Shown in pieces: positions 1 through 16,410 of a stretch of 64,000 nucleotides of DNA. The notes beneath the pieces are model-generated. The model did no database searches and was not told where the DNA came from. It was given only the letters and a program-made list of their open reading frames with translations. Position 1 is the stretch's first letter; each line of letters opens with the position of its first letter. The position numbers were made by a program, and so were the translations under genes. This DNA is from Epithemia pelagica (taxonomy: Eukaryota; Protista; Bacillariophyta), in assembly GCA_946965045.2 (NCBI GenBank), contig OX337242.1, positions 2,356,001 through 2,420,000 of the forward strand, read 5' to 3'.

Positions 1-1737
1 GATCGCAAACCGTTGGGGAAGAACAATGGAAGCTGCCTCGTCAATCTCTTGGATCATACGAGCAAACAGTCCGCGAACAATTGACGTGCTTTCGCGACCA
101 ATGACACAGACTATGGGGAATACTGAGTTCCTGGATTGCTTGTAGGGATTGGAGGAGTCATTGAATTTCAATCCGCCCAAAGTATGCGACAGATGCTTTG
201 TCAACATGGCACCATCAATGCTTTGTGAGAGATTGACTGGACGAGAAGCAGCTTCACCATCCATCAATCCACCGGAATGTAGGATTACCCGCATCACGTC
301 AGCTGCGCGAAAGTAAAACCCTTCAGTCGAATCCCTCACATTCCTGATCATTCTAAAGGGACAAACAATCGAGCCGTAATGTTCCACCATAGCGGCACAA
401 TTCTGCAGAGAGGATGTGCTGGGTATGATGGTGCGCACATGCTTTTGTCCGTTAGTCTCAACACGACGGAGTAGCTCGATTCCTTCAAAATTCAACACTC
501 CTCCGTGTCGATCCATTTCAGAAAGAATACGGAATGGTGTGAAAACTGTTTGACGAAGGTGCTTGCCGACCACTTCAAGCAAGACATCCTTCATTCGTCC
601 CTGATGAATGTTGGAATTCAACAACATACCACACAACGCTTTTAAGAAACGCGTTGCTCGGTCACTATTCTTTCCATGGCGAAGAATGGCCTTGGAAATG
701 ATGACACGAATGTTAGCAATGATCTGGTCCCCACGTTCCTTGTCCGAGGCCCGTGTTGGAACGGACTGAGACACCGCTTTATCGGATTGTATCTCGATGA
801 TACGAGCTTCAAGCTTGGTGATCTGTTTAGATTTCTTCTTGCTGCTCCTACGGACCTTGTTCAGATTGAGTTTGAGAGACTGAATCTCACGGTCCTTGTT
901 TTTCAAGGATAGCTCTATGTCCTTTTGTTTCGAGGACAGAGCGTCGTTTGCTTTTTGTACTTGTGCAAGTAACTGGCTGGTTGTCATTCCGGAATAGGAT
1001 GTGGAGGAATTGGCCAGACTGCATGTGAGAACAGACATCCCTTCATTGCCATGGGGGGCAATAACTTCCTTGGCAACAGGTTCTTCTTCAGCTTCGGATT
1101 CTTCAGAATCCGCAAAAATATCATTGGAGGATGACGAACCACTGGAGACGTCAGAATCATCTTCGGAATCAGGATCTGAATCAGATTCCTCTTGTTTCGG
1201 AGGAGGTTTCTTGTCTTCTTCGGTTGTAACAACAGTAGATTGATTAACAGGGGTTACATGAATCCCTTTCGACCTTTTAGAACGGCGATTCTTGCGGAAG
1301 CGACGTTTTGCTTTGCGTTTCTTCGGCCGGTTCTTGATAGATTCAATCTTGACTGGGTCGGTTGGCATGACTATATTGTCATGGGAAGCTGTGCAAGTGA
1401 ATCGGCCATTCTCTGCTTTCCTGTTAATGGGGATGTTGGGGAAAGCGACTTCTTGTTCATCCGCGTCAAAGCAATTGCCGCAAAAGAAAAAACCTTCCCA
1501 TCGCTGATATCGGTCTCTACCAAATACAGAACATGGCTTCGTGTCTTCGTTGGCAAAGTCACGGCAGATGCGGGCAATCCTTTTCCTTTCTAAAGCACTT
1601 GAGTGGGGAGGACGCTTCGCCTCTCTACGACGAGCTCTCGTCTGTTGATTCGGGGAAACTGGGGCAGCCTCTGCTTCTTGCAACTCTTCTTCGGCTTGCT
1701 CCATGGCAAGCCGTTGGGCTTGACGGGTGGTTGGCAT
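1..1737 (-). CDS. RAG1/Transib-like DDE transposase, N-terminal 579 aa (continues beyond window start)
   Basis: Manual translation gives an uninterrupted frame from ATG 1737 (MPTTRQAQ...) to base 1; it is absent from the ORF track, probably because it has no stop in the window. Motifs: TPFRILSEMD...LNFEGIELLRRVE...RTIIPSTSSLQ (resembles RAG1 DDBD region), GFYFRAADVMRVIL (cf. RAG1 RFRYDSALVSAL), NLSQSIDGA with putative first catalytic Asp at nt 214-216 (cf. RAG1 KESCDG), QSRNSVFPIVCVIGRES (cf. RAG1 PNSELCCKPLCLMLADES). Confidence 0.7.
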   Translation of the reverse strand, partial: MPTTRQAQRLAMEQAEEELQEAEAAPVSPNQQTRARRREAKRPPHSSALERKRIARICRDFANEDTKPCSVFGRDRYQRWEGFFFCGNCFDADEQEVAFPNIPINRKAENGRFTCTASHDNIVMPTDPVKIESIKNRPKKRKAKRRFRKNRRSKRSKGIHVTPVNQSTVVTTEEDKKPPPKQEESDSDPDSEDDSDVSSGSSSSNDIFADSEESEAEEEPVAKEVIAPHGNEGMSVLTCSLANSSTSYSGMTTSQLLAQVQKANDALSSKQKDIELSLKNKDREIQSLKLNLNKVRRSSKKKSKQITKLEARIIEIQSDKAVSQSVPTRASDKERGDQIIANIRVIISKAILRHGKNSDRATRFLKALCGMLLNSNIHQGRMKDVLLEVVGKHLRQTVFTPFRILSEMDRHGGVLNFEGIELLRRVETNGQKHVRTIIPSTSSLQNCAAMVEHYGSIVCPFRMIRNVRDSTEGFYFRAADVMRVILHSGGLMDGEAASRPVNLSQSIDGAMLTKHLSHTLGGLKFNDSSNPYKQSRNSVFPIVCVIGRESTSIVRGLFARMIQEIDEAASIVLPQRFAI

Positions 1738-2228
1738 CGTTGGGTCTTCAATCGAAAGGAGAGGTGCCTGTTTGATTGATATGTTGATTCAGGAAGAGAG
1801 ACATGATGGAACTTTATTCAGAGTTCCTTGTCAACATCATCTTTTCATCGGCTTCGGGTTCTGCGATTGAGTTTAGAACGGATGAATGAAATGCGACTAA
1901 GGGGTAATGTAATATTCATGAACATATAAATTTTATGCAAAAAATCGTCGGGCGAGTTCTCCAAATCCATTCTCATACGTTTGGACTTAGTGAAATTTGG
2001 GAAAATGGGGTTCTGAAGAGGACGTGTGACAGGGGGTACTTCCACGATGATATGGCTCTTATGTAACGATGGCCTCACCTTGCCTTATGTATCAGAAAAG
2101 GTTTGGCATAGTTACATAAGAGCCAAGTCTCCGTTGTTGTGCCAATTCATTGGCTTTTTGGTACTGGCAGTCTTGGATGTTCATTCACGGTAGAGTCTCG
2201 GATTATATTTAATGAATGTCCTATTCGG

Positions 2229-2255
2229 GGTTTTTCCATTGATTAGAGCACAGTG
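2229..2255 (-). repeat. RSS-like terminal inverted repeat, candidate end of the Transib/RAG-like element
   Basis: Minus strand from 2255 reads CACTGTG-CTCTAATCAAT-GGAAAAACC: 6/7 match to heptamer CACAGTG, 11-nt spacer, 7/9 match to nonamer ACAAAAACC. It faces into the transposase gene ~520 nt away. Confidence 0.55.
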
Positions 2256-4014
2256 GGTGTGACATGTTTCTAAAGCGGTATTGGGTGGGGGAGGGTTGAC
2301 ATGCGCGCTAAAATGAACCGGAAATGCTGCTATTGTTTTAAAAAAAACCCTCCGATTGCGGGGGTACCTCCCGTCTGCTGTCCATACGGTTATTCCCATA
2401 TTTTCCTAAAAAATGTAAAACTTATTTCTTTCAAATTTCTTTTGATTTAGCACATTATTATAACGTCCAAGCCAACTGTAATAACTGGCTTCGCCCTATT
2501 GTGTAGCCGCTTGCGCTCATGAATGGGAAACAGGAACCGGCGTGAGCCGTGAGACTTGACGAGACATGCACAGAGAAATCTACAAGCCCATTTTGTACTC
2601 TAAAGTCTATACTGTTTCAGAAGCGAGTACTCTTTACGTAGTAGTGGATCAAGCTTCACGGAATCATCACACACACACACACACACCAAACCCTGAAAAT
2701 ACACACACATGATGCAATGCACCTCTAGGAGTATCAACACAAGCTCCTGGCACTTTGTCTATGGCAAAGATAAAAGCATAGTCCACTACTAGTTTAGGCT
2801 TCCTGCTTCCTGGGCTTACATACCCCATGATGACGCTGTCAAACCTTCGCTTCATCATTGCAGTGGTTGATTGTTCAGTGCAGTGGTTGATTGTCATGTT
2901 TCATGTTGTCATCCTTCCTTTGATGCATTATGCCTTCACTTGTGATCTAGGTGGATGCATTCTGCCTTCACTTGTGATCTAGGTGGATGGTTTTGACCAT
3001 AAAGTTGTCACTGTGGTCGTTCGTCCGGCTGGATGGTTTTCTTTTGGTTTTTGGTGTGCTCATGGTCGTCTTTTGTGGTGTTGCTCGAAAAGTGAGACGA
3101 TATACAAGGCGTGACCGGCGCGTCGATTTCGAACGATCGAAGAGAGGCTGGCGATATCACCCGGCTGGCGCTTTGGGAAAAAATACGAGACAATTTTTTT
3201 CCTTTCGGATGACGGACGAACAAAGGTACCCCCCCAATCGCACCCTTTTAAATCAATACAAATACACTACAGACGCTGAGAAGTCTTCCGGAAAGATACC
3301 TAAAAAAGATACCCTCACTTTTGTTCCACCGGCTTTGGCAAGCAAAGATCTGTCATTTGAACCCTTTCATGAAAAAAAACAAATACAGTCCTTTCAAACA
3401 GACACTCAATGATGCATGTGGACCCCCTATGTCAAGAGAATGCGGGTTGATGCCCCTTAGAATGCCGCTCTCAGAGTTGAGATTCCCTCTCAATGAGCCG
3501 ATTTTCCGGCCTTTGCCGCACAATGGGCTCGCCGTGTTCGGGTAAAACCAGTCAATGCTTCATCCTATCTTTCCCTGGTCCGAAATGTTTCTGCGGAAGA
3601 TTACGGTAGGCAACTTCCAGTGGGAGCACAATGGATTTTTCCAGCCGATTTGGTCATTGTTGTAAGCGTGCAAGATTCATTCTTCGATGCAGATACGGGC
3701 CAGCTTGATCCAGTATCTGTCAGCAGCAGCAACGTTCGAGCTGGTTTCATTCGAACGACCTGCCGTTGGAGGCATAGGCCAATATCATCCCCAGCACTTT
3801 TTGCTTCCCATCAATTTCATTCCACACATACAAATCGGTCCGAAAAATACTTTCACGCGAAGAAAAATGACTACAAGACTCAATGTTGTGAAATCAAGAA
3901 TCCTCTATTTTGCTTTTTCATTTTGATATGCATACGGCAATAGCCTCTACTACAGTACATACCCTTGTCATTCGTTTCCCGTTTCTCTTGAGCCACACTT
4001 CTACCCGCAAGAAG

Positions 4015-5217
4015 TCACTCACTTTTGCCGCTTGTTCGGAAACGACGTCGTTCAGAGAGTTTGGTATTCAGCCAGAACTTTTCGATTTGGTCCACGGACC
4101 TTCTTGGCAAAAATGTGGATATAAGATTCCAGCGGTTTCCAAATCTTTGTCGTTTCTCCAAAATAATCAGCTTCTCCTGAATGGTGAGAGGCGTTTTGAG
4201 GAGATTGGGGTCAATCACGTTCTCAAAGTGATCTCGAATCTCGATACAAGTTCGACCTGGAAGTTGGGCTTGTATGACAGAGTACTTGATGTTCTTTTTG
4301 CGGTACTCACGAATAATTTCTTCTTCCTCTACCGTCCATGGCAATTGATGGTGCTGAAGCTTTTTGTCGAGGGTACCGAGGAATGTACTCTTGATACCCA
4401 TGTCACTCGGAGTGACGTTATCTTTAGCATTGCCGACAATGGACGAATCATGGACGAAAGTGGGTGTCTCCCATCGAGCAGACGCGTCATGATCACGCTT
4501 GAGGGTGCCTTCTTGAGACAGTTCTTCCCAGGTATCAGGGTGGGGTTCCCGGGATTCTGGTTGTGGAAGTCTCTTGCCCTTTAGAGTTGTGGCCATCCGG
4601 GACTGAAATAGAAGGCGCTTGCCCTTGATGGGTGTAACGCATCGAATATGTTTCGGATGAATGGGCTTCTTGGTTTTTCGGGAAGTCTCGGGCGTTGGAA
4701 AGCAATATAAGCGATCGTCCTTGTATGTCTCATTCATGGTTTGTGATTCCCCAGCGTCGTCGAAATTCTGAGCACTCAAATCGGCGTCTGATTCCCACGA
4801 TTTATCGAGATCAGCAGCATTCGAATCCTCTTCTGATTCCCAAGAGTCGTCGAAATCTTGACTAATCGAGTCATCTTCTTGAACAGATGAATCATTGTCG
4901 TTATTGGCTGCTGTGGGAAACGGTGACTTTTTGATTGGAAAGGACACAAAGTTTTTGGGCAGATGTCGGGGATTCGGGGGAAACCGCATGTCATTATCGG
5001 TGAAATCGAACATGTCCACCAATTCGTTGGTCTTGAGCTCAGCATCGGATTGCTCAGAGACTATTTGTTGTGCAGCCAGGAGAATGCTCTCGTCATCCCA
5101 CGAGGAAACTTTGTGCGTCTTGAGGGGATTTCCTTCATTTTCAGCCGATGCTGATGAGCCCACAAAGCGAGGCTTGGTCGGTGTAATGGTGGGAAGTGGA
5201 ACAGTGCGTGAAGTCAT
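4015..5217 (-). CDS. R2R3-type Myb DNA-binding protein (copy 1)
   Basis: Two C-terminal Myb repeats: LPWTVEEEEII...LPGRTCIEIRDHFENVIDPNL and PLTIQEKLII...FGNRWNLISTFLPRRSVDQIEKFW, after a long disordered N-terminus. Confidence 0.85.
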   Translation of the reverse strand: MTSRTVPLPTITPTKPRFVGSSASAENEGNPLKTHKVSSWDDESILLAAQQIVSEQSDAELKTNELVDMFDFTDNDMRFPPNPRHLPKNFVSFPIKKSPFPTAANNDNDSSVQEDDSISQDFDDSWESEEDSNAADLDKSWESDADLSAQNFDDAGESQTMNETYKDDRLYCFPTPETSRKTKKPIHPKHIRCVTPIKGKRLLFQSRMATTLKGKRLPQPESREPHPDTWEELSQEGTLKRDHDASARWETPTFVHDSSIVGNAKDNVTPSDMGIKSTFLGTLDKKLQHHQLPWTVEEEEIIREYRKKNIKYSVIQAQLPGRTCIEIRDHFENVIDPNLLKTPLTIQEKLIILEKRQRFGNRWNLISTFLPRRSVDQIEKFWLNTKLSERRRFRTSGKSE

Positions 5218-6123
5218 TGCGATTTAATTGATTGGCAGGAGTTTGGATGCACACGATTGCCTGGTCAAAGTGATGTTTGATTTGGGAAGGAGCAAATTTT
5301 ATGAGAACAAGATGAATGTTTGTGCCAAGATGGACAAGGCAAAAGAGATTTGCAAACCGCAACGCAACGAAGGTTTACGATTGACTCCGAAGAGACTGGT
5401 TTTGCATCTTGTGCGGCGACAAGTGTACGTGGAACTGTAGGTATATGTTCTACGGGAATGCTTGTGTCGCGCGCTGCTCGATCCCCAGTATGAGTTCCGC
5501 GATATTCGGACGAGATCGGAGATTGGTTTTGCATGGATGAAACGGCGGATGGGTGGTTCGAGAAACGGTCCATCATCTCTCTTGGAGGCAGTCGTCCCCA
5601 AAAGCATGCATGGATCATTCCTTCCACTCCAAATCGCACTGGGAGCGGCCTTGGAATCGGCACAACGCGAAATCAGGATCACATGGAAGGAATGGATGGC
5701 CGCATAAGAGTTGTTCATGCACAGTCCATGAACATGAACAAGATCATATCCGTAGACTAGGTCCTTTTGCCACATGAGATTCCTGCCTTCAAACTGTGAC
5801 CGAATGAATCGTGAATCGTGACTGTGTGGAATTCATTATTATTTAAGCCTCTATAAATTAACTATCCGTACTCCGTACTCGTAAAACTAACCCTTCGAAC
5901 TTCGAATACCTCGAAGTTCTTCTGCCCAAGTGGCACACAATGACACCCAAAGACAACACACTGCCGCCGCTGGATAGGGAGACGAGGCATGAAGTCAGAA
6001 CAACCATGACGTTACAATGTGGAATCAGGTCACGATTCCGCACAACTTGAGCCCCGGCATCGTGAGAAGGCAACTACAAGTCTCAGTCAGGGCCTCCTGT
6101 AGCTACCTTCACAGGTCTCAGTC

Positions 6124-7944
6124 TTACGAACGTCGCAATGCTTTGGTGACTCGCTCCGGATCGTCAAAGAATCTGACCGGGTTGTCGATGCATCCCAGTT
6201 CCTCATGATCAAAGAAATCTTTGACCGTTTCGACCGAACTACAATCCACAGCTACAGTCAATCCTTCATAACCCTCTTCGTCAACCTCTTCCGGCCGTCG
6301 GAATGACAAATGAACATCATCCGGGACAACAAAGGCGATCTTGACCGACACACAATCTGATTGGAGCTTAAACGTCTGTAACAGAGGTCGGAGGAACTTG
6401 GTCCTAAACGTTCGAGGGTTGAAGGTGTGCTCAGCGGAAATAGTATACTGAAAGCACCAAACTGTTACGTTGTCATTGGGATCCTTGGTAAGAAGGGCTG
6501 CATCGATGTTTGCGAAATTGGGTACACTTGGAATCCAGTAAACCAGAAAGTCGGAGAGTTGATTAACTCCCTCTACACCGGTCCCCTTGCTCTGGAGAAT
6601 GCCAGATATAGGGCTTGGACGTTTGTAGAAAAGCTGATGGAGAAGCTCCTCAAAGTGGCATCCCGCTGCACTTGCCAGCCCTTTCTCTTTGGATTCCATA
6701 TAGGCATTGTAGTAATTTTCCAGGCCGACCCGGTCCCGCAAGAGACGTGCGACAAACTGTGAGTCCACAACCTGATAAGCAGATCCAAAGTAGGTCCAGC
6801 TGGATGTCACAACAGGGATTCGGAACATGGTTCGAACACGATCGGGGCTTTTTTTGTCTCCACTTCCTTTTGTGTCAACAATACTTAGCATTGCCTGATT
6901 CTTGGATATCGCATTCACCGTCGCCGTCGTATCGGCCTTCCATATGTCTGGGTTCTGAGCGTACTTTAACGCCTCCCGGATCCGGCCACCAGTATGATAG
7001 AAAATATCCTCAAAAACTTCATCGGGAGAATAGCTAGAAGCAGATTTGTCGCCGTCATCGCCATCTGCATCGGCTTCTTCAAGACCTTCCATTTCATCAT
7101 CACATTTCGTTGTTGCTGCTGCTGGGGCCGATGACGCCACTCTTGCAACCCCATCGACTGCTGGCGCCGCTGCTGCAACGTCGTCGATGCCAGATGGTTT
7201 ATGGTTGTCTAGAATATCCGAAGTCAATTCGAGCGCTTTTTGCAGGTCCGTCTTTTCCCAGCCACTTAGAACGACGAGAGCTGAAAATGTCGCACTTTCT
7301 CCTTGAGGTACGTCATGTCCACCGCTTGTCGCTAGGTAATGGTGTGGTAGGTACAGATCTTGGTCGCCTTCGTGTAGACCATCAATGAACAAGAGAACAT
7401 TGTTAGACATAACGTGAACCTGGGCATCCGAACGGTTGATCGCCATATGCTTCTGTAGAACGTCCGCCAGCACATCGTCGACTCCCAAGTTTCCTTGCAA
7501 TATTCGACTGTAGCGAATCGTAATCTCCTTATTCTCTTTGTCGCTTTTATCCTTCTTCCTCATAAAAAACACGCTCGTGAACTCTCCAACAGCCCTCGTC
7601 TTGCGAATGAAGCAGACAGGCTTCTCCTCGTACAGGGCACGGTACAGTGCCACCAAGAATATTAATACGCTTTTTCCAACACCAGGTGAACCGATTAAAA
7701 CCTGTCTTAGTTTTCGATCCATCTTGGTGAGTTCCTGGAACACTTCACACATTTCTTTTCGAATGTAGATCGAATTTTTGGGGAAGAATTGCTCCTTCAT
7801 CTTAGTAGGAGGGGCGAGGGGTGAAAAAAAAGTTTCGGTCTCGATACACTCCCCCTCCACTAGGCCTGCTGCACCCAAGTCAATGTCTGCGCAATTAAGC
7901 GTTGCTGTTTCATACTGGATTGACGACGACGACGACGACGACAT
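6124..7944 (-). CDS. Crinkler/RHS-type protein: P-loop NTPase plus C-terminal PD-(D/E)XK-like REase domain (copy 1)
   Basis: Walker A GSPGVGKS after YIRKEM; Walker B-like LLFIDG; C-terminal WIPSVPNFANIDAALL...FQYTISAEH, typical of CR-REase domains. Confidence 0.75.
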   Translation of the reverse strand: MSSSSSSSIQYETATLNCADIDLGAAGLVEGECIETETFFSPLAPPTKMKEQFFPKNSIYIRKEMCEVFQELTKMDRKLRQVLIGSPGVGKSVLIFLVALYRALYEEKPVCFIRKTRAVGEFTSVFFMRKKDKSDKENKEITIRYSRILQGNLGVDDVLADVLQKHMAINRSDAQVHVMSNNVLLFIDGLHEGDQDLYLPHHYLATSGGHDVPQGESATFSALVVLSGWEKTDLQKALELTSDILDNHKPSGIDDVAAAAPAVDGVARVASSAPAAATTKCDDEMEGLEEADADGDDGDKSASSYSPDEVFEDIFYHTGGRIREALKYAQNPDIWKADTTATVNAISKNQAMLSIVDTKGSGDKKSPDRVRTMFRIPVVTSSWTYFGSAYQVVDSQFVARLLRDRVGLENYYNAYMESKEKGLASAAGCHFEELLHQLFYKRPSPISGILQSKGTGVEGVNQLSDFLVYWIPSVPNFANIDAALLTKDPNDNVTVWCFQYTISAEHTFNPRTFRTKFLRPLLQTFKLQSDCVSVKIAFVVPDDVHLSFRRPEEVDEEGYEGLTVAVDCSSVETVKDFFDHEELGCIDNPVRFFDDPERVTKALRRS

Positions 7945-8473
7945 GCTGGTAAAATCGTGAGACCTCGTTCAAGATTGCCTCTTTGTCTTCTGTCGATGCC
8001 TTCGTTTGTTGTTGTTTGTGTTTAGCGGAATGGTGAGTCCTGGTTGATCGTGATTCACAGGGGCGATTGGCCCACTAGTCTCTAGAGTAGTCTCTGAGTC
8101 CCCTTTACCACTCTAGCTAGGTACTCGCCGGCCTGCTGTAGTCTAAACTCCCTCCACTCGCACCTGGTCGCTCGTATCTAACTCATCAGTAGTCAAGGGG
8201 TCGGTCGGGGTTAGTTCCTCTAGGTCGTTTTCGCCATAGACCACCACTGGAGGCGTGTCCTTTGGTGTGCTGAAGCCGAACCTAGCGCGGAGTCCTTCGA
8301 TCCGTCGTTCTTGGTAGGTCATGGGGGGCACAGTATCTAGGATACTGCTGCTCCTCCCATCCAATCCTTGATCAAAGTCATCATTTGAGGTTGAAAGTCG
8401 AGCGGTAGGCGACTGGGAGGAGGTCCACGAGAAAAACGAGGTGTTTGACTGGGACGACGAGGTAGACACTGGG

Positions 8474-8518
8474 CGGCAGACTAAGGCTCTTTCGTCGTTC
8501 GTCGACTCATCAGTGCTG
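8474..8518 (-). ncRNA. Hammerhead-ribozyme-like motif, inverted copy
   Basis: Reverse complement reads CAGCA-CTGATGA-GTCG-ACGAA-CGAC-GAAA-GAGCCTTA-GTC-TGCCG. Confidence 0.45.
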
Positions 8519-9006
8519 GGGGCGTTGTTGTTGGGTGGGAACCGGTGAAACCGCGGTTTGTGGCGGCATGCTCCGTAGATTTCGTTGCATTTGTTGATTG
8601 CTAGGTTGGGGTGTTTGCTCGTGAATTTGAGGATTTCCTATGACCGGTTCACCAACATCCGGGAGCATTTTCAAGGAGATCTCAACTCCAAGTTAAATGA
8701 CGGACTACGATCCTTGGATTTTGAAGATCTGGACTGTAACTGCAGGAACCGTGAAGCCTGTCCCTACGGAGGTTTCTGCAGACGTTCCATCGTGGTCTAT
8801 AAAGCCACCTGCCTCAAAACCGGCAAGCAGTACATTGGCAACACTCAACAACACGTAAAGAAAAGGATCCAACAACATGTCCAAGACGTGAAGCAACTGG
8901 TTCTCAAGAACAAGAGCTCTGATTCGTTTGCTAGCCACTTCGCCTGCTTCATTCCCAGAGAAACCGAGAAGAAGGAAATCAAGAACCACGTCCGACTCAA
9001 AGTGGA

Positions 9007-9206
9007 NNNNNNNNNNNNNNNNNNNNNNNNNNNNNNNNNNNNNNNNNNNNNNNNNNNNNNNNNNNNNNNNNNNNNNNNNNNNNNNNNNNNNNNNNNNNNN
9101 NNNNNNNNNNNNNNNNNNNNNNNNNNNNNNNNNNNNNNNNNNNNNNNNNNNNNNNNNNNNNNNNNNNNNNNNNNNNNNNNNNNNNNNNNNNNNNNNNNNN
9201 NNNNNN
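9007..9206. other. Scaffold gap (200 N)
   Basis: Run of N; 8702-9006 is repeated at 9207-9511 on the other side. Confidence 0.99.
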
Positions 9207-9712
9207 GGACTACGATCCTTGGATTTTGAAGATCTGGACTGTAACTGCAGGAACCGTGAAGCCTGTCCCTACGGAGGTTTCTGCAGACGTTCCATCGTGG
9301 TCTATAAAGCCACCTGCCTCAAAACCGGCAAGCAGTACATTGGCAACACTCAACAACACGTAAAGAAAAGGATCCAACAACATGTCCAAGACGTGAAGCA
9401 ACTGGTTCTCAAGAACAAGAGCTCTGATTCGTTTGCTAGCCACTTCGCCTGCTTCATTCCCAGAGAAACCGAGAAGAAGGAAATCAAGAACCACGTCCGA
9501 CTCAAAGTGGACATACTTTGGCAAGGCAAACCGCTTTCCACTGTAAAAACCTTTGGGACAAAGTCCTGCAAACTCTGCGCACGAGAACACTTGGAAATCC
9601 TCAAATTCACGAGCAAACACCCCAACCTAGCAATCAACAAATGCAACGAAATCTACGGAGCATGCCGCCACAAACCGCGGTTTCACCGGTTCCCACCCAA
9701 CAACAACGCCCC

Positions 9713-9757
9713 CAGCACTGATGAGTCGACGAACGACGAAAGAGTCTTAGTCTGCCG
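9713..9757 (+). ncRNA. Type I hammerhead-ribozyme-like motif inside the Penelope ORF
   Basis: CTGATGA core, stem II GTCG/CGAC, GAAA core, GTC triplet followed by TGC that pairs with the GCA before the core (stem I). Stem III is non-canonical (GAAAG rather than GAAAC). Confidence 0.5.
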
Positions 9758-10820
9758 TCCAGTGTCTACCTCGTCGTCCCAGTCAAACACCTCGTTTTTC
9801 TCGTGGACCTCCTCCCAGTCGCCTACCGCTCGACTTTCAACCTCAAATGATGACTTTGATCAAGGATTGGATGGGAGGAGCAGCAGTATCCTAGATACTG
9901 TGCCCCCCATGACCTACCAAGAACGACGGATCGAAGGACTCCGCGCTAGGTTCGGCTTCAGCACACCAAAGGACACGCCTCCAGTGGTGGTCTATGGCGA
10001 AAACGACCTAGAGGAACTAACCCCGACCGACCCCTTGACTACTGATGAGTTTGATACGAGCGACCAGGTGCGAGTGGAGGGAGTTTAGACTACACCAGGC
10101 CGGCGCGTTAGCGAACGAAAGTAGAATACTTCCGAAAACCTAGGTTGATAGATGGAAACTAAACTAACCTTCACACTCTTTGCTGTTTCGGTTTTCTGAT
10201 TTTGGTATATAATTTATATGTTCGATCTCGTATTCCTGACGACCTGTGATAAAAAAGGGACGAATTGGAAGCACCTACTTTCATCCCGTACCGGTTGATC
10301 CTTATATGCCTCCTAGGAGAGCGCGAGGGCCAGGACGCTATATTGGAATGTCAAAGGGACCAGAGTTGCCGGCACAATGCTGTGGTCGGACCATTTTGAC
10401 CTCACCATGGTCAATCAGGGCACCTTTTTCTGAGGTGCTTTGACTTCCGTCGCCAAATATTTTGTACTTTTCGTATAGTAGTGTAGAGGCGCGCATGTCA
10501 TTCTATATGATCCCCCATATTATTCTAAGATTTTGATACTCCGAATGAGCCAGCCGTCCCCCTGTAGGTTTGTACTGGATTATACGTGAATTTTTAATGC
10601 GACTAAAATAACCAAAAACCAATTGGTGCAACAAAGGGTTTCCAGAGGGAGTACCTAGCTAGAGGGGACTCAGAGACTACTAGAGACTAGTGGGCCAATC
10701 GCCCCTGTGAATCACGATCAACCAGGACTCACCATTCCGCTAAACACAAACAACAACAAACGAAGGCATCGACAGAAGACAAAGAGGCAATCTTGAACGA
10801 GGTCTCACGATTTTACCAGC

Positions 10821-12641
10821 ATGTCGTCGTCGTCGTCGTCGTCAATCCAGTATGAAACAGCAACGCTTAATTGCGCAGACATTGACTTGGGTGCAGCAGG
10901 CCTAGTGGAGGGGGAGTGTATCGAGACCGAAACTTTTTTTTCACCCCTCGCCCCTCCTACTAAGATGAAGGAGCAATTCTTCCCCAAAAATTCGATCTAC
11001 ATTCGAAAAGAAATGTGTGAAGTGTTCCAGGAACTCACCAAGATGGATCGAAAACTAAGACAGGTTTTAATCGGTTCACCTGGTGTTGGAAAAAGCGTAT
11101 TAATATTCTTGGTGGCACTGTACCGTGCCCTGTACGAGGAGAAGCCTGTCTGCTTCATTCGCAAGACGAGGGATGTTGGAGAGTTCACGAGCGTGTTTTT
11201 TATGAGGAAGAAGGATAAAAGCGACAAAGAGAATAAGGAGATTACGATTCGCTACAGTCGAATATTGCAAGGAAACTTGGGAGTCGACGATGTGCTGGCG
11301 GACGTTCTACAGAAGCATATGGCGATCAACCGTTCGGATGCCCAGGTTCACGTTATGTCTAACAATGTTCTCTTGTTCATTGATGGTCTACACGAAGGCG
11401 ACCAAGATCTGTACCTACCACACCATTACCTAGCGACAAGCGGTGGACATGACGTACCTCAAGGAGAAAGTGCGACATCTTCAGCTCTCGTCGTTCTTAG
11501 TGGCTGGGAAAAGACGGACCTGCAAAAAGCGCTCGAATTGACTTCGGATATTCTAGACAACCATGAACCATCTGGCATCGACGACGTTGCAGCAGCGGCG
11601 CCAGCAGTCGATGGGGTTGCAAGAGCGGCGTCACCGGCCCCAGCAGCAGCAACAACGAAATGTGATGATGAAATGGAAGGTCTTGAAGAAGCCGATGCAG
11701 ATGGCGATGACGGCGACAAATCTGCTTCTAGCTATTCTCCCGATGAAGTTTTTGAGGATATTTTCTATCATACTGGTGGCCGGATCCGGGAGGCGTTAAA
11801 GTACGCTCAGAACCCAGACATATGGAAGGCCGATACGACGGCGACGGTGAATGCGATATCCAAGAATCAGGCAATGCTAAGTATTGTTGACACAAAAGGA
11901 AGTGGAGACAAAAAAAGCCCCGATCGTGTTCGAACCATGTTCCGAATCCCTGTTGTGACATCCAGCTGGACCTACTTTGGATCTGCTTATCAGGTTGTGG
12001 ACTCACAGTTTGTCGCACGTCTCTTGCGGGACCGGGTCGGCCTGGAAAATTACTACAATGCCTATATGGAATCCAAAGAGAAAGGGCTGGCAAGTGCAGC
12101 GGGATGCCACTTTGAGGAGCTTCTCCATCAGCTTTTCTACAAACGTCCAAGCCCTATATCTGGCATTCTCCAGAGCAAGGGGACCGGTGTAGAGGGAGTT
12201 AATCAACTCTCCGACTTTCTGGTTTACTGGATTCCAAGTGTACCCAATTTCGCAAACATCGATGCAGCCCTTCTTACCAAGGATCCCAATGACAACGTAA
12301 CAGTTTGGTGCTTTCAGTATACTATTTCCGCTGAGCACACCTTCAACCCTCGAACGTTTAGGACCAAGTTCCTCCGACCTCTGTTACAGACGTTTAAGCT
12401 CCAATCAGATTGTGTGTCGGTCAAGATCGCCTTTGTTGTCCCGGATGATGTTCATTTGTCATTCCGACGGCCGGAAGAGGTTGACGAAGAGGGTTATGAA
12501 GGATTGACTGTAGCTGTGGATTGTAGTTCGGTCGAAACGGTCAAAGATTTCTTTGATCATGAGGAACTGGGATGCATCGACAACCCGGTCAGATTCTTTG
12601 ACGATCCGGAGCGAGTCACCAAAGCATTGCGACGTTCGTAA
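10821..12641 (+). CDS. Crinkler/RHS-type NTPase+REase protein (copy 2)
   Basis: Same 606-aa protein as copy 1 with five amino-acid differences. Confidence 0.75.
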   Translation: MSSSSSSSIQYETATLNCADIDLGAAGLVEGECIETETFFSPLAPPTKMKEQFFPKNSIYIRKEMCEVFQELTKMDRKLRQVLIGSPGVGKSVLIFLVALYRALYEEKPVCFIRKTRDVGEFTSVFFMRKKDKSDKENKEITIRYSRILQGNLGVDDVLADVLQKHMAINRSDAQVHVMSNNVLLFIDGLHEGDQDLYLPHHYLATSGGHDVPQGESATSSALVVLSGWEKTDLQKALELTSDILDNHEPSGIDDVAAAAPAVDGVARAASPAPAAATTKCDDEMEGLEEADADGDDGDKSASSYSPDEVFEDIFYHTGGRIREALKYAQNPDIWKADTTATVNAISKNQAMLSIVDTKGSGDKKSPDRVRTMFRIPVVTSSWTYFGSAYQVVDSQFVARLLRDRVGLENYYNAYMESKEKGLASAAGCHFEELLHQLFYKRPSPISGILQSKGTGVEGVNQLSDFLVYWIPSVPNFANIDAALLTKDPNDNVTVWCFQYTISAEHTFNPRTFRTKFLRPLLQTFKLQSDCVSVKIAFVVPDDVHLSFRRPEEVDEEGYEGLTVAVDCSSVETVKDFFDHEELGCIDNPVRFFDDPERVTKALRRS

Positions 12642-13547
12642 GACTGAGACCTGTGAAGGTAGCTACAGGAGGCCCTGACTGAGACTTGTAGTTGCCTTCT
12701 CACGATGCCGGGGCTCAAGTTGTGCGGAATCGTGACCTGATTCCACATTGTAACGTCATGGTTGTTCTGACTTCATGCCTCGTCTCCCTATCCAGCGGCG
12801 GCAGTGTGTTGTCTTTGGGTGTCATTGTGTGCCACTTGGGCAGAAGAACTTCGAGGTATTCGAAGTTCGAAGGGTTAGTTTTACGAGTACGGAGTACGGA
12901 TAGTTAATTTATAGAGGCTTAAATAATAATGAATTCCACACAGTCACGATTCACGATTCATTCGGTCACAGTTTGAAGGCAGGAATCTCATGTGGCAAAA
13001 GGACCTAGTCTACGGATATGATCTTGTTCATGTTCATGGACTGTGCATGAACAACTCTTATGCGGCCATCCATTCCTTCCATGTGATCCTGATTTCGCGT
13101 TGTGCCGATTCCAAGGCCGCTCCCAGTGCGATTTGGAGTGGAAGGAATGATCCATGCATGCTTTTGGGGACGACTGCCTCCAAGAGAGATGATGGACCGT
13201 TTCTCGAACCACCCATCCGCCGTTTCATCCATGCAAAACCAATCTCCGATCTCGTCCGAATATCGCGGAACTCATACTGGGGATCGAGCAGCGCGCGACA
13301 CAAGCATTCCCGTAGAACATATACCTACAGTTCCACGTACACTTGTCGCCGCACAAGATGCAAAACCAGTCTCTTCGGAGTCAATCGTAAACCTTCGTTG
13401 CGTTGCGGTTTGCAAATCTCTTTTGCCTTGTCCATCTTGGCACAAACATTCATCTTGTTCTCATAAAATTTGCTCCTTCCCAAATCAAACATCACTTTGA
13501 CCAGGCAATCGTGTGCATCCAAACTCCTGCCAATCAATTAAATCGCA

Positions 13548-14750
13548 ATGACTTCACGCACTGTTCCACTTCCCACCATTACACCGACCAAGCCTCGCTT
13601 TGTGGGCTCATCAGCATCGGCTGAAAATGAAGGAAATCCCCTCAAGACGCACAAAGTTTCCTCGTGGGATGACGAGAGCATTCTCCTGGCTGCACAACAA
13701 ATAGTCTCTGAGCAATCCGATGCTGAGCTCAAGACCAACGAATTGGTGGACATGTTCGATTTCACCGATAATGACATGCGGTTTCCCCCGAATCCCCGAC
13801 ATCTGCCCAAAAACTTTGTGTCCTTTCCAATCAAAAAGTCACCGTTTCCCACAGCAGCCAATAACGACAATGATTCATCTGTTCAAGAAGATGACTCGAT
13901 TAGTCAAGATTTCGACGACTCTTGGGAATCAGAAGAGGATTCGAATGCTGCTGATCTCGATAAATCGTGGGAATCAGACGCCGATTTGAGTGCTCAGAAT
14001 TTCGACGACGCTGGGGAATCACAAACCATGAATGAGACATACAAGGACGATCGCTTATATTGCTTTCCAACGCCCGAGACTTCCCGAAAAACCAAGAAGC
14101 CCATTCATCCGAAACATATTCGATGCGTTACACCCATCAAGGGCAAGCGCCTTCTATTTCAGTCCCGGATGGCCACAACTCTAAAGGGCAAGAGACTTCC
14201 ACAACCAGAATCCCGGGAACCCCACCCTGATACCTGGGAAGAACTGTCTCAAGAAGGCACCCTCAAGCGTGATCATGACGCGTCTGCTCGATGGGAGACA
14301 CCCACTTTCGTCCATGATTCGTCCATTGTCGGCAATGCTAAAGATAACGTCACTCCGAGTGACATGGGTATCAAGAGTACATTCCTCGGTACCCTCGACA
14401 AAAAGCTTCAGCACCATCAATTGCCATGGACGGTAGAGGAAGAAGAAATTATTCGTGAGTACCGCAAAAAGAACATCAAGTACTCTGTCATACAAGCCCA
14501 ACTTCCAGGTCGAACTTGTATCGAGATTCGAGATCACTTTGAGAACGTGATTGACCCCAATCTCCTCAAAACGCCTCTCACCATTCAGGAGAAGCTGATT
14601 ATTTTGGAGAAACGACAAAGATTTGGAAACCGCTGGAATCTTATATCCACATTTTTGCCAAGAAGGTCCGTGGACCAAATCGAAAAGTTCTGGCTGAATA
14701 CCAAACTCTCTGAACGACGTCGTTTCCGAACAAGCGGCAAAAGTGAGTGA
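13548..14750 (+). CDS. R2R3-type Myb protein (copy 2)
   Basis: Translation reads identical to 4015..5217. Confidence 0.85.
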   Translation: MTSRTVPLPTITPTKPRFVGSSASAENEGNPLKTHKVSSWDDESILLAAQQIVSEQSDAELKTNELVDMFDFTDNDMRFPPNPRHLPKNFVSFPIKKSPFPTAANNDNDSSVQEDDSISQDFDDSWESEEDSNAADLDKSWESDADLSAQNFDDAGESQTMNETYKDDRLYCFPTPETSRKTKKPIHPKHIRCVTPIKGKRLLFQSRMATTLKGKRLPQPESREPHPDTWEELSQEGTLKRDHDASARWETPTFVHDSSIVGNAKDNVTPSDMGIKSTFLGTLDKKLQHHQLPWTVEEEEIIREYRKKNIKYSVIQAQLPGRTCIEIRDHFENVIDPNLLKTPLTIQEKLIILEKRQRFGNRWNLISTFLPRRSVDQIEKFWLNTKLSERRRFRTSGKSE

Positions 14751-16410
14751 CTTCTTGCGGGTAGAAGTGTGGCTCAAGAGAAACGGGAAACGAATGACAA
14801 GGGTATGTACTGTAGTAGAGGCTATTGCCGTATGCATATCAAAATGAAAAAGCAAAATAGAGGATTCTTGATTTCACAACATTGAGTCTTGTAGTCATTT
14901 TTCTTCGCGTGAAAGTATTTTTCGGACCGATTTGTATGTGTGGAATGAAATTGATGGGAAGCAAAAAGTGCTGGGGATGATATTGGCCTATGCCTCCAAC
15001 GGCAGGTCGTTCGAATGAAACCAGCTCGAACGTTGCTGCTGCTGACAGATACTGGATCAAGCTGGCCCGTATCTGCATCGAAGAATGAATCTTGCACGCT
15101 TACAACAATGACCAAATCGGCTGGAAAAATCCATTGTGCTCCCACTGGAAGTTGCCTACCGTAATCTTCCGCAGAAACATTTCGGACCAGGGAAAGATAG
15201 GATGAAGCATTGACTGGTTTTACCCGAACACGGCGAGCCCATTGTGCGGCAAAGGCCGGAAAATCGGCTCATTGAGAGGGAATCTCAACTCTGAGAGCGG
15301 CATTCTAAGGGGCATCAACCCGCATTCTCTTGACATAGGGGGTCCACATGCATCATTGAGTGTCTGTTTGAAAGGACTGTATTTGTTTTTTTTCATGAAA
15401 GGGTTCAAATGACAGATCTTTGCTTGCCAAAGCCGGTGGAACAAAAGTGAGGGTATCTTTTTTAGGTATCTTTCCGGAAGACTTCTCAGCGTCTGTAGTG
15501 TATTTGTATTGATTTAAAAGGGTGCGATTGGGGGGGTACCTTTGTTCGTCCGTCATCCGAAAGGAAAAAAATTGTCTCGTATTTTTTCCCAAAGCGCCAG
15601 CCGGGTGATATCGCCAGCCTCTCTTCGATCGTTCGAAATCGACGCGCCGGTCACGCCTTGTATATCGTCTCACTTTTCGAGCAACACCACAAAAGACGAC
15701 CATGAGCACACCAAAAACCAAAAGAAAACCATCCAGCCGGACGAACGACCACAGTGACAACTTTATGGTCAAAACCATCCACCTAGATCACAAGTGAAGG
15801 CAGAATGCATCAACCTAGATCACAAGTGAAGGCATAATGCATCAAAGGAAGGATGACAACATGAAACATGACAATCAACCACTGCAATGAACAATCAACC
15901 ACTGCAATGATGAAGCGAAGGTTTGACAGCGTCATCATGGGGTATGTAAGCCCAGGAAGCAGGAAGCCTAAACTAGTAGTGGACTATGCTTTTACCTTTC
16001 CCATAGACAAAGTGCCAGGAGCTTGTGTTGATACTCCTCGAGGTGCATTGCACCATGTGTGTGTATTTCATGGTTTGGTGTGTGTGTGTGATGATTCCGT
16101 GAAGATTGATCCACTACTGCGTAAAGAGTACTCGCTTCTGAAACAGTATAGACTATAGAGTACAAAATGGGCTTGTAGATTTCTTTGTGCATGTCTCGTC
16201 AAGTCTCACGGCTCACGCCGGTTCCTGTTTCCCATTCATGAGCGCAAGCGGCTACACAATAGGGCGAAGCCAGTTATTACAGTTGGCTTGGACGTTATAA
16301 TAATGTGCTAAATCAAAAGAAATTTGAAAGAAATAAGTTTTCCATTTTTTAGGAATATTTGGGAATAACCGTATGGACAGCAGACGGGAGGTACCCCCGC
16401 AATCGGAGGG

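Follow-up and report, generated by a model that had tools for sequence, protein, structure and literature searches.

The classic example of a transposase that was domesticated for immunity is provided by RAG1 and Transib. A recent study found that EnSpm/CACTA, Mirage, Chapaev, Transib, Plavaka, ESTA, Lanisha and RAG1 share a C(2)C motif and an H(3-4)H motif between the second catalytic Asp (D2) and the catalytic Glu, that elements of this CACTA-Mirage-Chapaev-Transib (CMCT) group mostly have 5'-CA..TG-3' ends and 2-5-bp duplications, and that ESTA was recognised through HHpred similarity to RAG1 (Kojima 2025; PMC12730594). Here we describe a transposon whose end lies at the left edge of a 64,000-nucleotide stretch (the window) of contig OX337242.1 from the diatom Epithemia pelagica. 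With a probability that we put at about 0.85, window positions 1-2335 are the transposase-side end of a cut-and-paste DNA transposon of ~6.1 kb that forms a separate lineage within CMCT and whose ends do not resemble a recombination signal sequence (RSS). The element carries two convergent genes, one encoding a DDE transposase of 1115 aa and the other a BAH-like partner. A preceding analysis of the letters alone (the sequence-only reading) had seen in this locus the end of a RAG1-like transposon outside animals; what stands of that view is a predicted RAG1/Transib core fold and an element bounded by terminal inverted repeats (TIRs) in a diatom-type genome, and what falls is the terminus, which lies at 2335 and is without RSS-like signals. 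The parts of the element that fall within the window are as follows.

1..1737, minus strand: N-terminal 579 codons of the transposase, from translation (nucleotide identity 99.8% to copy L007, 98.7% to L011 and 98.1% to L012)
1..705, minus strand: predicted start of the RAG1-fold catalytic core, residues ~345-579, from the model of the relative P0002, its Foldseek and VIA matches and residue mapping
214..216, minus strand: codon of D508 (in SIDGA), the putative first catalytic Asp, an invariant column in 39 family members
778..990, minus strand: predicted coiled-coil or low-complexity linker, residues ~250-320, with weak coiled-coil Pfam matches and poor conservation in an alignment of 10 lineages
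1363..1662, minus strand: conserved N-terminal module, residues 26-125, from an alignment of 10 diverged lineages
1738..2335, minus strand: 5' non-coding part of the element (598 nt, subterminal), presumed promoter and 5' untranslated region, 90-95% identical to L001 though synonymous sites are near saturation
2229..2255, minus strand: RSS-like string CACTGTG-11-GGAAAAACC, internal by copy comparison (element positions 81-107)
2313..2335, minus strand: terminal inverted repeat CAATAGCAGCATTTCCGGTTCAT (23 nt) at the transposase-side end, placed by the stop in homology and by its inverted partner in complete copies; it occurs once in the window
2336, minus strand: flanking base, A on this strand, predicted 1-bp target-site duplication of the window copy by analogy with 10 of 10 complete insertions; the matching base is predicted ~3.7 kb left of the window start

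Extent of the element and its copies

We searched for copies in ENA ERZ21939226, the assembly to which the window belongs, and compared the following four with the window copy.

L007, 9370-15442 (6073 bp): 99.8% identical over window 1-2335
L011, 7647-13739 (6093 bp): 98.7% identical
L012, 9647-15727 (6081 bp): 98.1% identical, with N-terminal frameshifts
L001, 9369-13870 (4502 bp): protein 87% identical

Homology to all four ends exactly at window position 2335, and the flanks beyond it are unrelated (a 12-nt BLAST overhang past 2335 in the comparison with L011 is an A/T run). An inverted partner of CAATAGCAGCATTTCCGGTTCAT closes each complete copy, with 20-22 of its 23 bases matching; the element ends are imperfect 23-nt inverted repeats, 5'-CAATAGCAGCA...TGCTGCTATTG-3'. 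TIR pairs were identified in ten elements, all of which begin with CA and finish with TG. Their termini read CAATAGCAGC, CAATAGGAGC, or CACTACGAGC and variants: CAATAG termini occur in the window's family, L004, L006 and L008, and CAC termini in L002 (CACTAC; CACTACGAG...), L003 (CACTTCC) and L009 (CACAACG). The loci reached through the proteins P0152, P0157 and P0182 are other copies (L007, L011 and L012) and not the far end of the window copy, which, judging by these sister copies, is predicted ~3.74 kb to the left of window base 1 as inverted ...GCTGCTATTG.

Beyond the TIR the two ends differ. Within the first 60 nt (L001-L012), a CGC[AC][AT]GC-like block lies at ~29-31 on the transposase side and a CAAAA[AT]..GCC[AT]GCC block at ~39-50 on the partner side. 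In the window's family these GC-rich blocks are offset from each other by 10-11 nt, in the CAC-ended lineages by 19-20 nt, and an offset of 14 is also seen. A fixed offset of 11 nt between the two ends was considered and set aside, as the offsets vary by lineage (10-11, 14, 19-20) and the blocks are too degenerate to call.

Both ends are defined in ten elements, which represent seven diverged lineages (L001-L004, L006-L009, L011 and L012). In 10 of 10 the base that immediately precedes the left end is identical to the one that immediately follows the right end (in order, C, T, T, T, T, G, A, T, T and T). The chance of such an outcome is ~0.27^10, or 2e-6. None of the ten has a 5-bp duplication, only 0-2 of the 5 flanking bases matching in each; the GGTGT at 2256-2260 that the sequence-only reading had proposed as a duplication of this length gives way to the 1-bp repeat. 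A 3-bp repeat matches fully in one of the ten (L003, TTT in a T run), and a 2-bp repeat in one of the eight tabulated elements, again L003 with its T run; L011 and L012 both lack it. The early impression of a 3-bp duplication, which came from TTT/TTT in L003, was not borne out in other elements, and the 7/8 match that suggested an 8-bp duplication in L009 arises from the TTGCCAA tandem into which that element inserted. L009 (5370-11527) sits in a tandem of this 7-mer, and when the element and one T are removed the register of the tandem is restored exactly; this favours a true 1-bp duplication over a target preference. To our knowledge, a 1-bp duplication is a property of no described eukaryotic cut-and-paste superfamily.

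The family has moved recently, because at least four copies 98-99.8% identical lie at unrelated loci together with an internally deleted derivative. That derivative, L001, is without 1585 bp spanning the 3' ends of both genes, a loss that makes it non-autonomous. In L012 the transposase is out of frame over the first ~45 codons, and L012 is a recently damaged copy. Divergence between L001 and L007 is a mosaic, with 90-95% identity over the first 1.4 kb (5' non-coding and N-terminal coding) and 73-79% over the catalytic core, where synonymous divergence (dS) is ~0.96; the pattern suggests either that lineages have recombined or that the 5' region is strongly constrained. In contigs of runs X1 and X2, which come from the same organism, the depth over the element is about that of the single-copy flanks, and these contigs include a second variant of the element, ~9% divergent, consistent with L001. 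In run X4 (same organism, library type unspecified) no contig lies on 1-2338 and the flank at 3253-5000 is covered, which could reflect either an insertion absent from that sample or an untranscribed element.

Transposase and partner gene

The transposase enters the window as a stop-free frame on the minus strand at 1-1737, with 579 codons, an ATG at 1737-1735 and no stop before the window edge. The sequence-only reading had pointed to this frame as missing from the list of open reading frames (ORFs); translation confirms it, and it was left out because ORFs running off an end are not listed. The full-length transposase of the window family has 1115 aa and is intact in the sister copies L007 and L011. 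The window thus holds the N-terminal 579 codons of that protein, its edge falling 10 codons short of the second catalytic Asp, D589. The peptide strings in which the sequence-only reading had recognised RAG1-core motifs are also present, FYFRAADVMRVIL at residue 474, SIDGA at 506 and QSRNSVFPIVCVIGRES at 534. Mapped onto the predicted fold of a relative, the first string lies on the pre-RNase-H strand and helix, SIDGA on the strand that bears the first catalytic Asp, and the last string on the third RNase-H strand. According to this model, the part of the core coded within the window would comprise a helical region like those for DNA binding and dimerisation, the pre-RNase-H region and strands one to three of the RNase-H fold.

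The evidence for the fold is an AlphaFold2 model of residues 170-900 of P0002, a relative that is 44-52% identical to the window protein (predicted local distance difference test score (pLDDT) 89; predicted template-modelling score (pTM) 0.84). An AlphaFold-Foldseek comparison had been proposed by the sequence-only reading as a check, and on this relative it bore the expectation out: the best 49 matches in the PDB were all RAG1, BbRAGL or HzTransib, with E down to 1.5e-10, and the 50th was the P element transposase (E 0.01). VIA-align gave Z 21.9 to HzTransib, with 416 of 480 residues aligned (21-478), and Z 20-21.7 to RAG1 over residues 459-1005 (416-470 residues aligned across the RAG1/Transib set), and Z 11.7 to the P element, 9.1 to ISCth4 and 7.6 to Hermes. 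A shape search of the ESM Atlas returned plant CACTA clusters (Pfam Transposase_21) with template-modelling scores (TM, by query) of 0.54-0.55, RAG1 with 0.56 and arthropod Transib-like proteins with 0.50. Among AlphaFold DB clusters, a broad set of unnamed eukaryotic proteins matched at a level equal to RAG1. This sharing of the fold in the ESM Atlas and AlphaFold DB agrees with the clade-wide similarity to RAG1 described by Kojima (2025; PMC12730594). By language-model features in the ESM Atlas, the nearest named clusters carry RAG1_RNase_H (arthropod Transib-like proteins and RAG1), and no Transposase_21 cluster stands among the 100 nearest; the language-model neighbours lean to RAG1/Transib, which we use as a lead only.

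Residues expected of such a fold are conserved. In 39 full-length members of the family, the Asp of SxDGA, the Asp of NCDMS, a PCxxC ~20 residues further on, NYxHxxxxxH and GxExxN are invariant, as are two further Cys and one His between PCxxC and NYxHxxxxxH. In window-family numbering the residues concerned are D508, D589, C610, C613, H957, H963 and E983 (D182, D264, C285, C288, H633, H639 and E659 in the model); C610/C613 follow the second Asp, H957/H963 precede the Glu, and D2 and the Glu are 394 residues apart. The second Asp, the Glu and the zinc ligands that the sequence-only reading had wished to see were in this way located in the full-length family protein, with D508 the sole residue of the conserved DDE and zinc-site set that is coded inside the window.

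Sequence searches gave a different picture. Against Pfam, the window protein and its full-length relatives matched nothing above coiled-coil noise; the RAG1-family models had no match at E<=10 to the window protein, P0001-3, P0180 or any of the 39 members, and PF02992, PF13960 and PF13963 (Transposase_21/DUF4218) had none among the 39. No RAG1 or Transib chain was found among PDB sequences by phmmer or by a profile of the 39 sequences (queries: the window protein, P0002 and the profile), and NCBIfam had no match for P0180 or for the partner P0157. The family itself is large: P0002 reaches 1403 cluster representatives at E<=1e-3, and those checked are all unnamed, one of them from a Bacillariaceae metagenome-assembled genome. 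Many members (P0016-P0149) lie on metagenome contigs of only 3-8 kb, mostly 5-7 kb and so about one element long, as would follow from assembly breaks at a repeated element. A literature search on Transib or CACTA elements in diatoms yielded no description of this family. The designation "RAG1/Transib-like transposase" therefore needs to be split. It appears right for the modelled fold (VIA Z 21-22) and the catalytic layout of D/D/E, CxxC and Hx5H; the modelled structure does not, on the other hand, separate the window-family protein from CACTA transposases, and membership of Transib is not established because the fold is equally CACTA-like and RAG1 models in Pfam find no match.

Ahead of the core, C69, C86, C89, C115 and H119 of the N-terminal module are invariant in 10 of 10 lineages. 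The motif SPNxQTR precedes the module, which had no match in a Pfam search. By inference from these residues, the module may be a zinc-binding DNA-binding domain that would bind the element ends.

The partner gene is convergent with and directly downstream of the transposase in 11 of 11 loci. Its product has 480-590 aa (~550-580 in the 6.1-kb element), is 37-99% identical between lineages and has no match in Pfam. In a predicted model (pLDDT 71, built on 16 sequences), residues 13-165 match the BAH fold with Z 8-10.3 (~120-130 residues aligned at ~3 Å), and the best 50 VIA rows are all BAH domains; this is a moderate match, which points to an N-terminal BAH-like domain. The Kelch/PHD RAG2-like ORF that the sequence-only reading had thought worth seeking is replaced by this gene, in whose model neither a Kelch propeller nor a PHD finger was found. 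Both genes are under purifying selection, with a ratio of nonsynonymous to synonymous divergence of 0.15-0.22 among young copies and of 0.07-0.09 against L001.

These results raise the possibility of the following mechanism. The N-terminal Cys/His module of the transposase and the helical part of its core would bind both ends, and the enzyme would excise the element by DDE chemistry, probably via hairpins on the flanks, as in RAG1 and Transib. Reinsertion with strand transfers staggered by one nucleotide would then give the 1-bp duplication, and the BAH-like partner may tether the transposase to chromatin or regulate it there.

Rival placements and genomic surroundings

Several points weigh against placing the element as a separate CMCT lineage with these properties. 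The far TIR of the window copy and its 1-bp repeat are read from sister copies, the far end itself lying outside the window, and the 1-bp repeat could be a target preference, against which only the L009 tandem argues. The fold comes from the predicted model of a 44-52%-identical relative and not from the window protein itself, and the BAH match is a moderate one, from a pLDDT 71 model on 16 sequences. Transposition, cleavage and zinc binding are all predicted, the position within CMCT is provisional, and H-x5-H is one residue longer than the clade's H(3-4)H.

Of the alternatives, the one that survives best is that the element is a true Transib, phylogenetically nested within that superfamily, with non-canonical ends and a shorter duplication, as reported for some dipteran Transib relatives. 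Variation of this sort has a precedent in a 2026 preprint that describes 3-bp and TA duplications within Transib, so that duplication length varies inside the superfamily. HzTransib, at Z 21.9, is the best solved structure, the language-model neighbours carry RAG1_RNase_H with no Transposase_21 in the top 100, and a CxxC follows the second Asp. However, neither the RAG1 Pfam models nor any RAG1 or Transib chain was matched by sequence or by the 39-sequence profile, and plant CACTA clusters match the model as well (0.54-0.55, against 0.56 for RAG1 and 0.50 for Transib-like proteins). Termini of CAATAG... or CACTACG... with a 1-bp duplication are also unlike those of described Transib elements, and D2 and the Glu are separated by 394 residues, compared with 254 in RAG1. 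We regard nesting within Transib as unlikely.

A second alternative is a divergent CACTA/EnSpm element of the CACTA-Mirage-Chapaev (CMC) group, whose transposase and second ORF would mirror TnpD and TnpA and whose ends would be of CACTA type. Sister lineages do end in CACTACGAG... (L002) or in CACTTCC and CACAACG (L003 and L009), the architecture has two genes, Transposase_21 clusters are structural neighbours, and the insertion between D2 and the Glu is long. Yet none of the 39 members matches Transposase_21/DUF4218 in Pfam, the 3-bp duplication is matched in only one element of ten, and there in a T run, and the 100 nearest language-model clusters include no Transposase_21. The partner, moreover, has a BAH-like fold in its model, and we know of no such fold in TnpA. 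This placement strikes us as distinctly improbable.

That the locus is instead a domesticated, immobile host gene of transposase origin would fit the strong purifying selection on both genes and the roughly single-copy read depth over the element, and is very hard to reconcile with 98-99.8% copies at four unrelated loci that share TIRs and have unrelated flanks, with the deletion derivative L001 and the frameshifted L012, and with at least 10 diverged lineages of equal structure within one assembly; we give it little credence.

The sequence-only reading had placed the element's end at CACTGTG (2255), as an RSS-like signal of heptamer and nonamer followed by GGTGT, in the manner of Transib and RAG. 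The string CACTGTG-11 nt-GGAAAAACC does lie where it was reported, at 2255-2229 in the right orientation and 518 nt upstream of the ATG, and the exact string occurs once in the window. Homology between copies nonetheless runs 80 nt beyond it, to 2335. In L001 the string has become CACTCTG...AGAAAAATT and in L008, a 71% relative, CACTATG...GTAAAACTA, and no counterpart was found at the other element end. There are 22 CAC[AT]GTG heptamers in the window on both strands. Of 300 simulated 64-kb sequences matched in composition, 18% contained one or more occurrences of a comparably loose RSS pattern (a perfect CAC[AT]GTG, a spacer of 11-13 or 22-24 and a nonamer of >=7/9), with a mean of 0.22. The heptamer-nonamer string is an internal chance string and is no evidence by itself. 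Although the transposase has, in its model, the RAG1/Transib fold, an element ending at this string is refuted by the copy comparisons, in which four near-identical copies and the 87% copy continue past it; the string is also mutated in two relatives, the simulations produce a similar pattern in 18% of windows, and a 5-bp duplication is seen at 0 of 10 elements. To headline this locus as an RSS-like heptamer with nonamer outside animals would be wrong, and that headline should be dropped.

The surroundings of the insertion are themselves repetitive. At window 2339-3340, ~1 kb adjoining the transposon, the depth of X1/X2 contigs is 10-50 times that of the neighbours, indicating a high-copy repeat. 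Loose read ends at 2342-2348, considered as a possible empty site, mark the boundary of that repeat. Window 2348-16410 is a near-perfect large palindrome, in which 2348-8107 is an inverted copy of 10660-16410 (99.5%, 5760 nt) and 8126-8638 an inverted copy of 9593-10105; the transposon end at 2335 lies only 12 nt outside the palindrome's outer edge. Arm B of the palindrome was examined as a paralogous empty site and was not clean. At other loci, a MULE/ZSWIM-type transposase gene adjoins the element in L008 (1-361), a DDE_Tnp_4 (Harbinger-type) gene adjoins it in L009 (3589-4749), and Copia RVT_2 genes are found in L001-L003.

Comparison with described systems

A broader reading, which we put forward tentatively and hold to be possible rather than probable, is that the family represents a superfamily-level lineage with the RAG1 fold in diatoms, and perhaps in other protists, with its own ends, a one-nucleotide stagger and a BAH subunit recruited independently. 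If true, this would parallel the pairing of RAG1 with RAG2 (PHD), and "nuclease plus chromatin reader" would be a recurrent solution for this fold. Where the RAG1 fold occurs, and which partners it has kept, bears on the origin of the two-subunit RAG recombinase. A family that looks live, its intact copies at different loci reaching 99.8% identity, would offer a tractable experimental system outside animals.

Among described systems, ESTA, Plavaka and Lanisha are likewise divergent CMCT transposases, identified chiefly through their resemblance to RAG1 in HHpred or in structure; their duplications are likewise non-canonical (TA in ESTA), and they carry additional cargo genes (TET/JBP in fungi). 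They differ from the window family in hosts (fungi and moss), duplications and cargo, and are set apart by their descriptions.

With CACTA/EnSpm and the wider CMC and CMCT groups (Yuan & Wessler 2011; Kojima 2025, PMC12730594), the family has in common the 5'-CA...TG-3' ends, which read CACTA in some sister lineages, the C(2)C and paired His between D2 and the Glu, the presence of more than one ORF, and a model to which Transposase_21 clusters match at TM 0.54-0.55. It differs from CMC elements in having no Transposase_21 match, in a duplication of 1 bp rather than 2-5 bp, in H-x5-H, in a second gene that is BAH-like and in a diatom-type host.

With Transib, RAG1 and RAG1-like proteins (HzTransib, 6PQX; mouse RAG1, 5ZDZ/4WWX; BbRAGL, 6B40), the family is predicted to share the fold of the whole core, which runs from the part for dimerisation and DNA binding through to the C-terminal domain. 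The two also agree in the order D...D-CxxC...HxnH-E, and the elements are TIR-bounded and, in the window family by prediction, move by cut and paste. Similarity to Transib and RAG1 is, however, undetected at the level of sequence (Pfam and PDB profile). Their ends carry a heptamer of the CACAGTG type and a nonamer, whereas those of the window family read CAATAGCAGC or CACTACGAGC; the duplication is 5 bp in Transib and 1 bp here; the insertion between D2 and the Glu is ~140 residues longer in the window family; and its N-terminal Cys/His module is unlike theirs. ProtoRAG, like the window-family element, has a convergent second gene. The partner in ProtoRAG and the RAG transposon is a Kelch protein, with or without PHD, whereas that of the window family has no propeller in its model and appears to be BAH-like.

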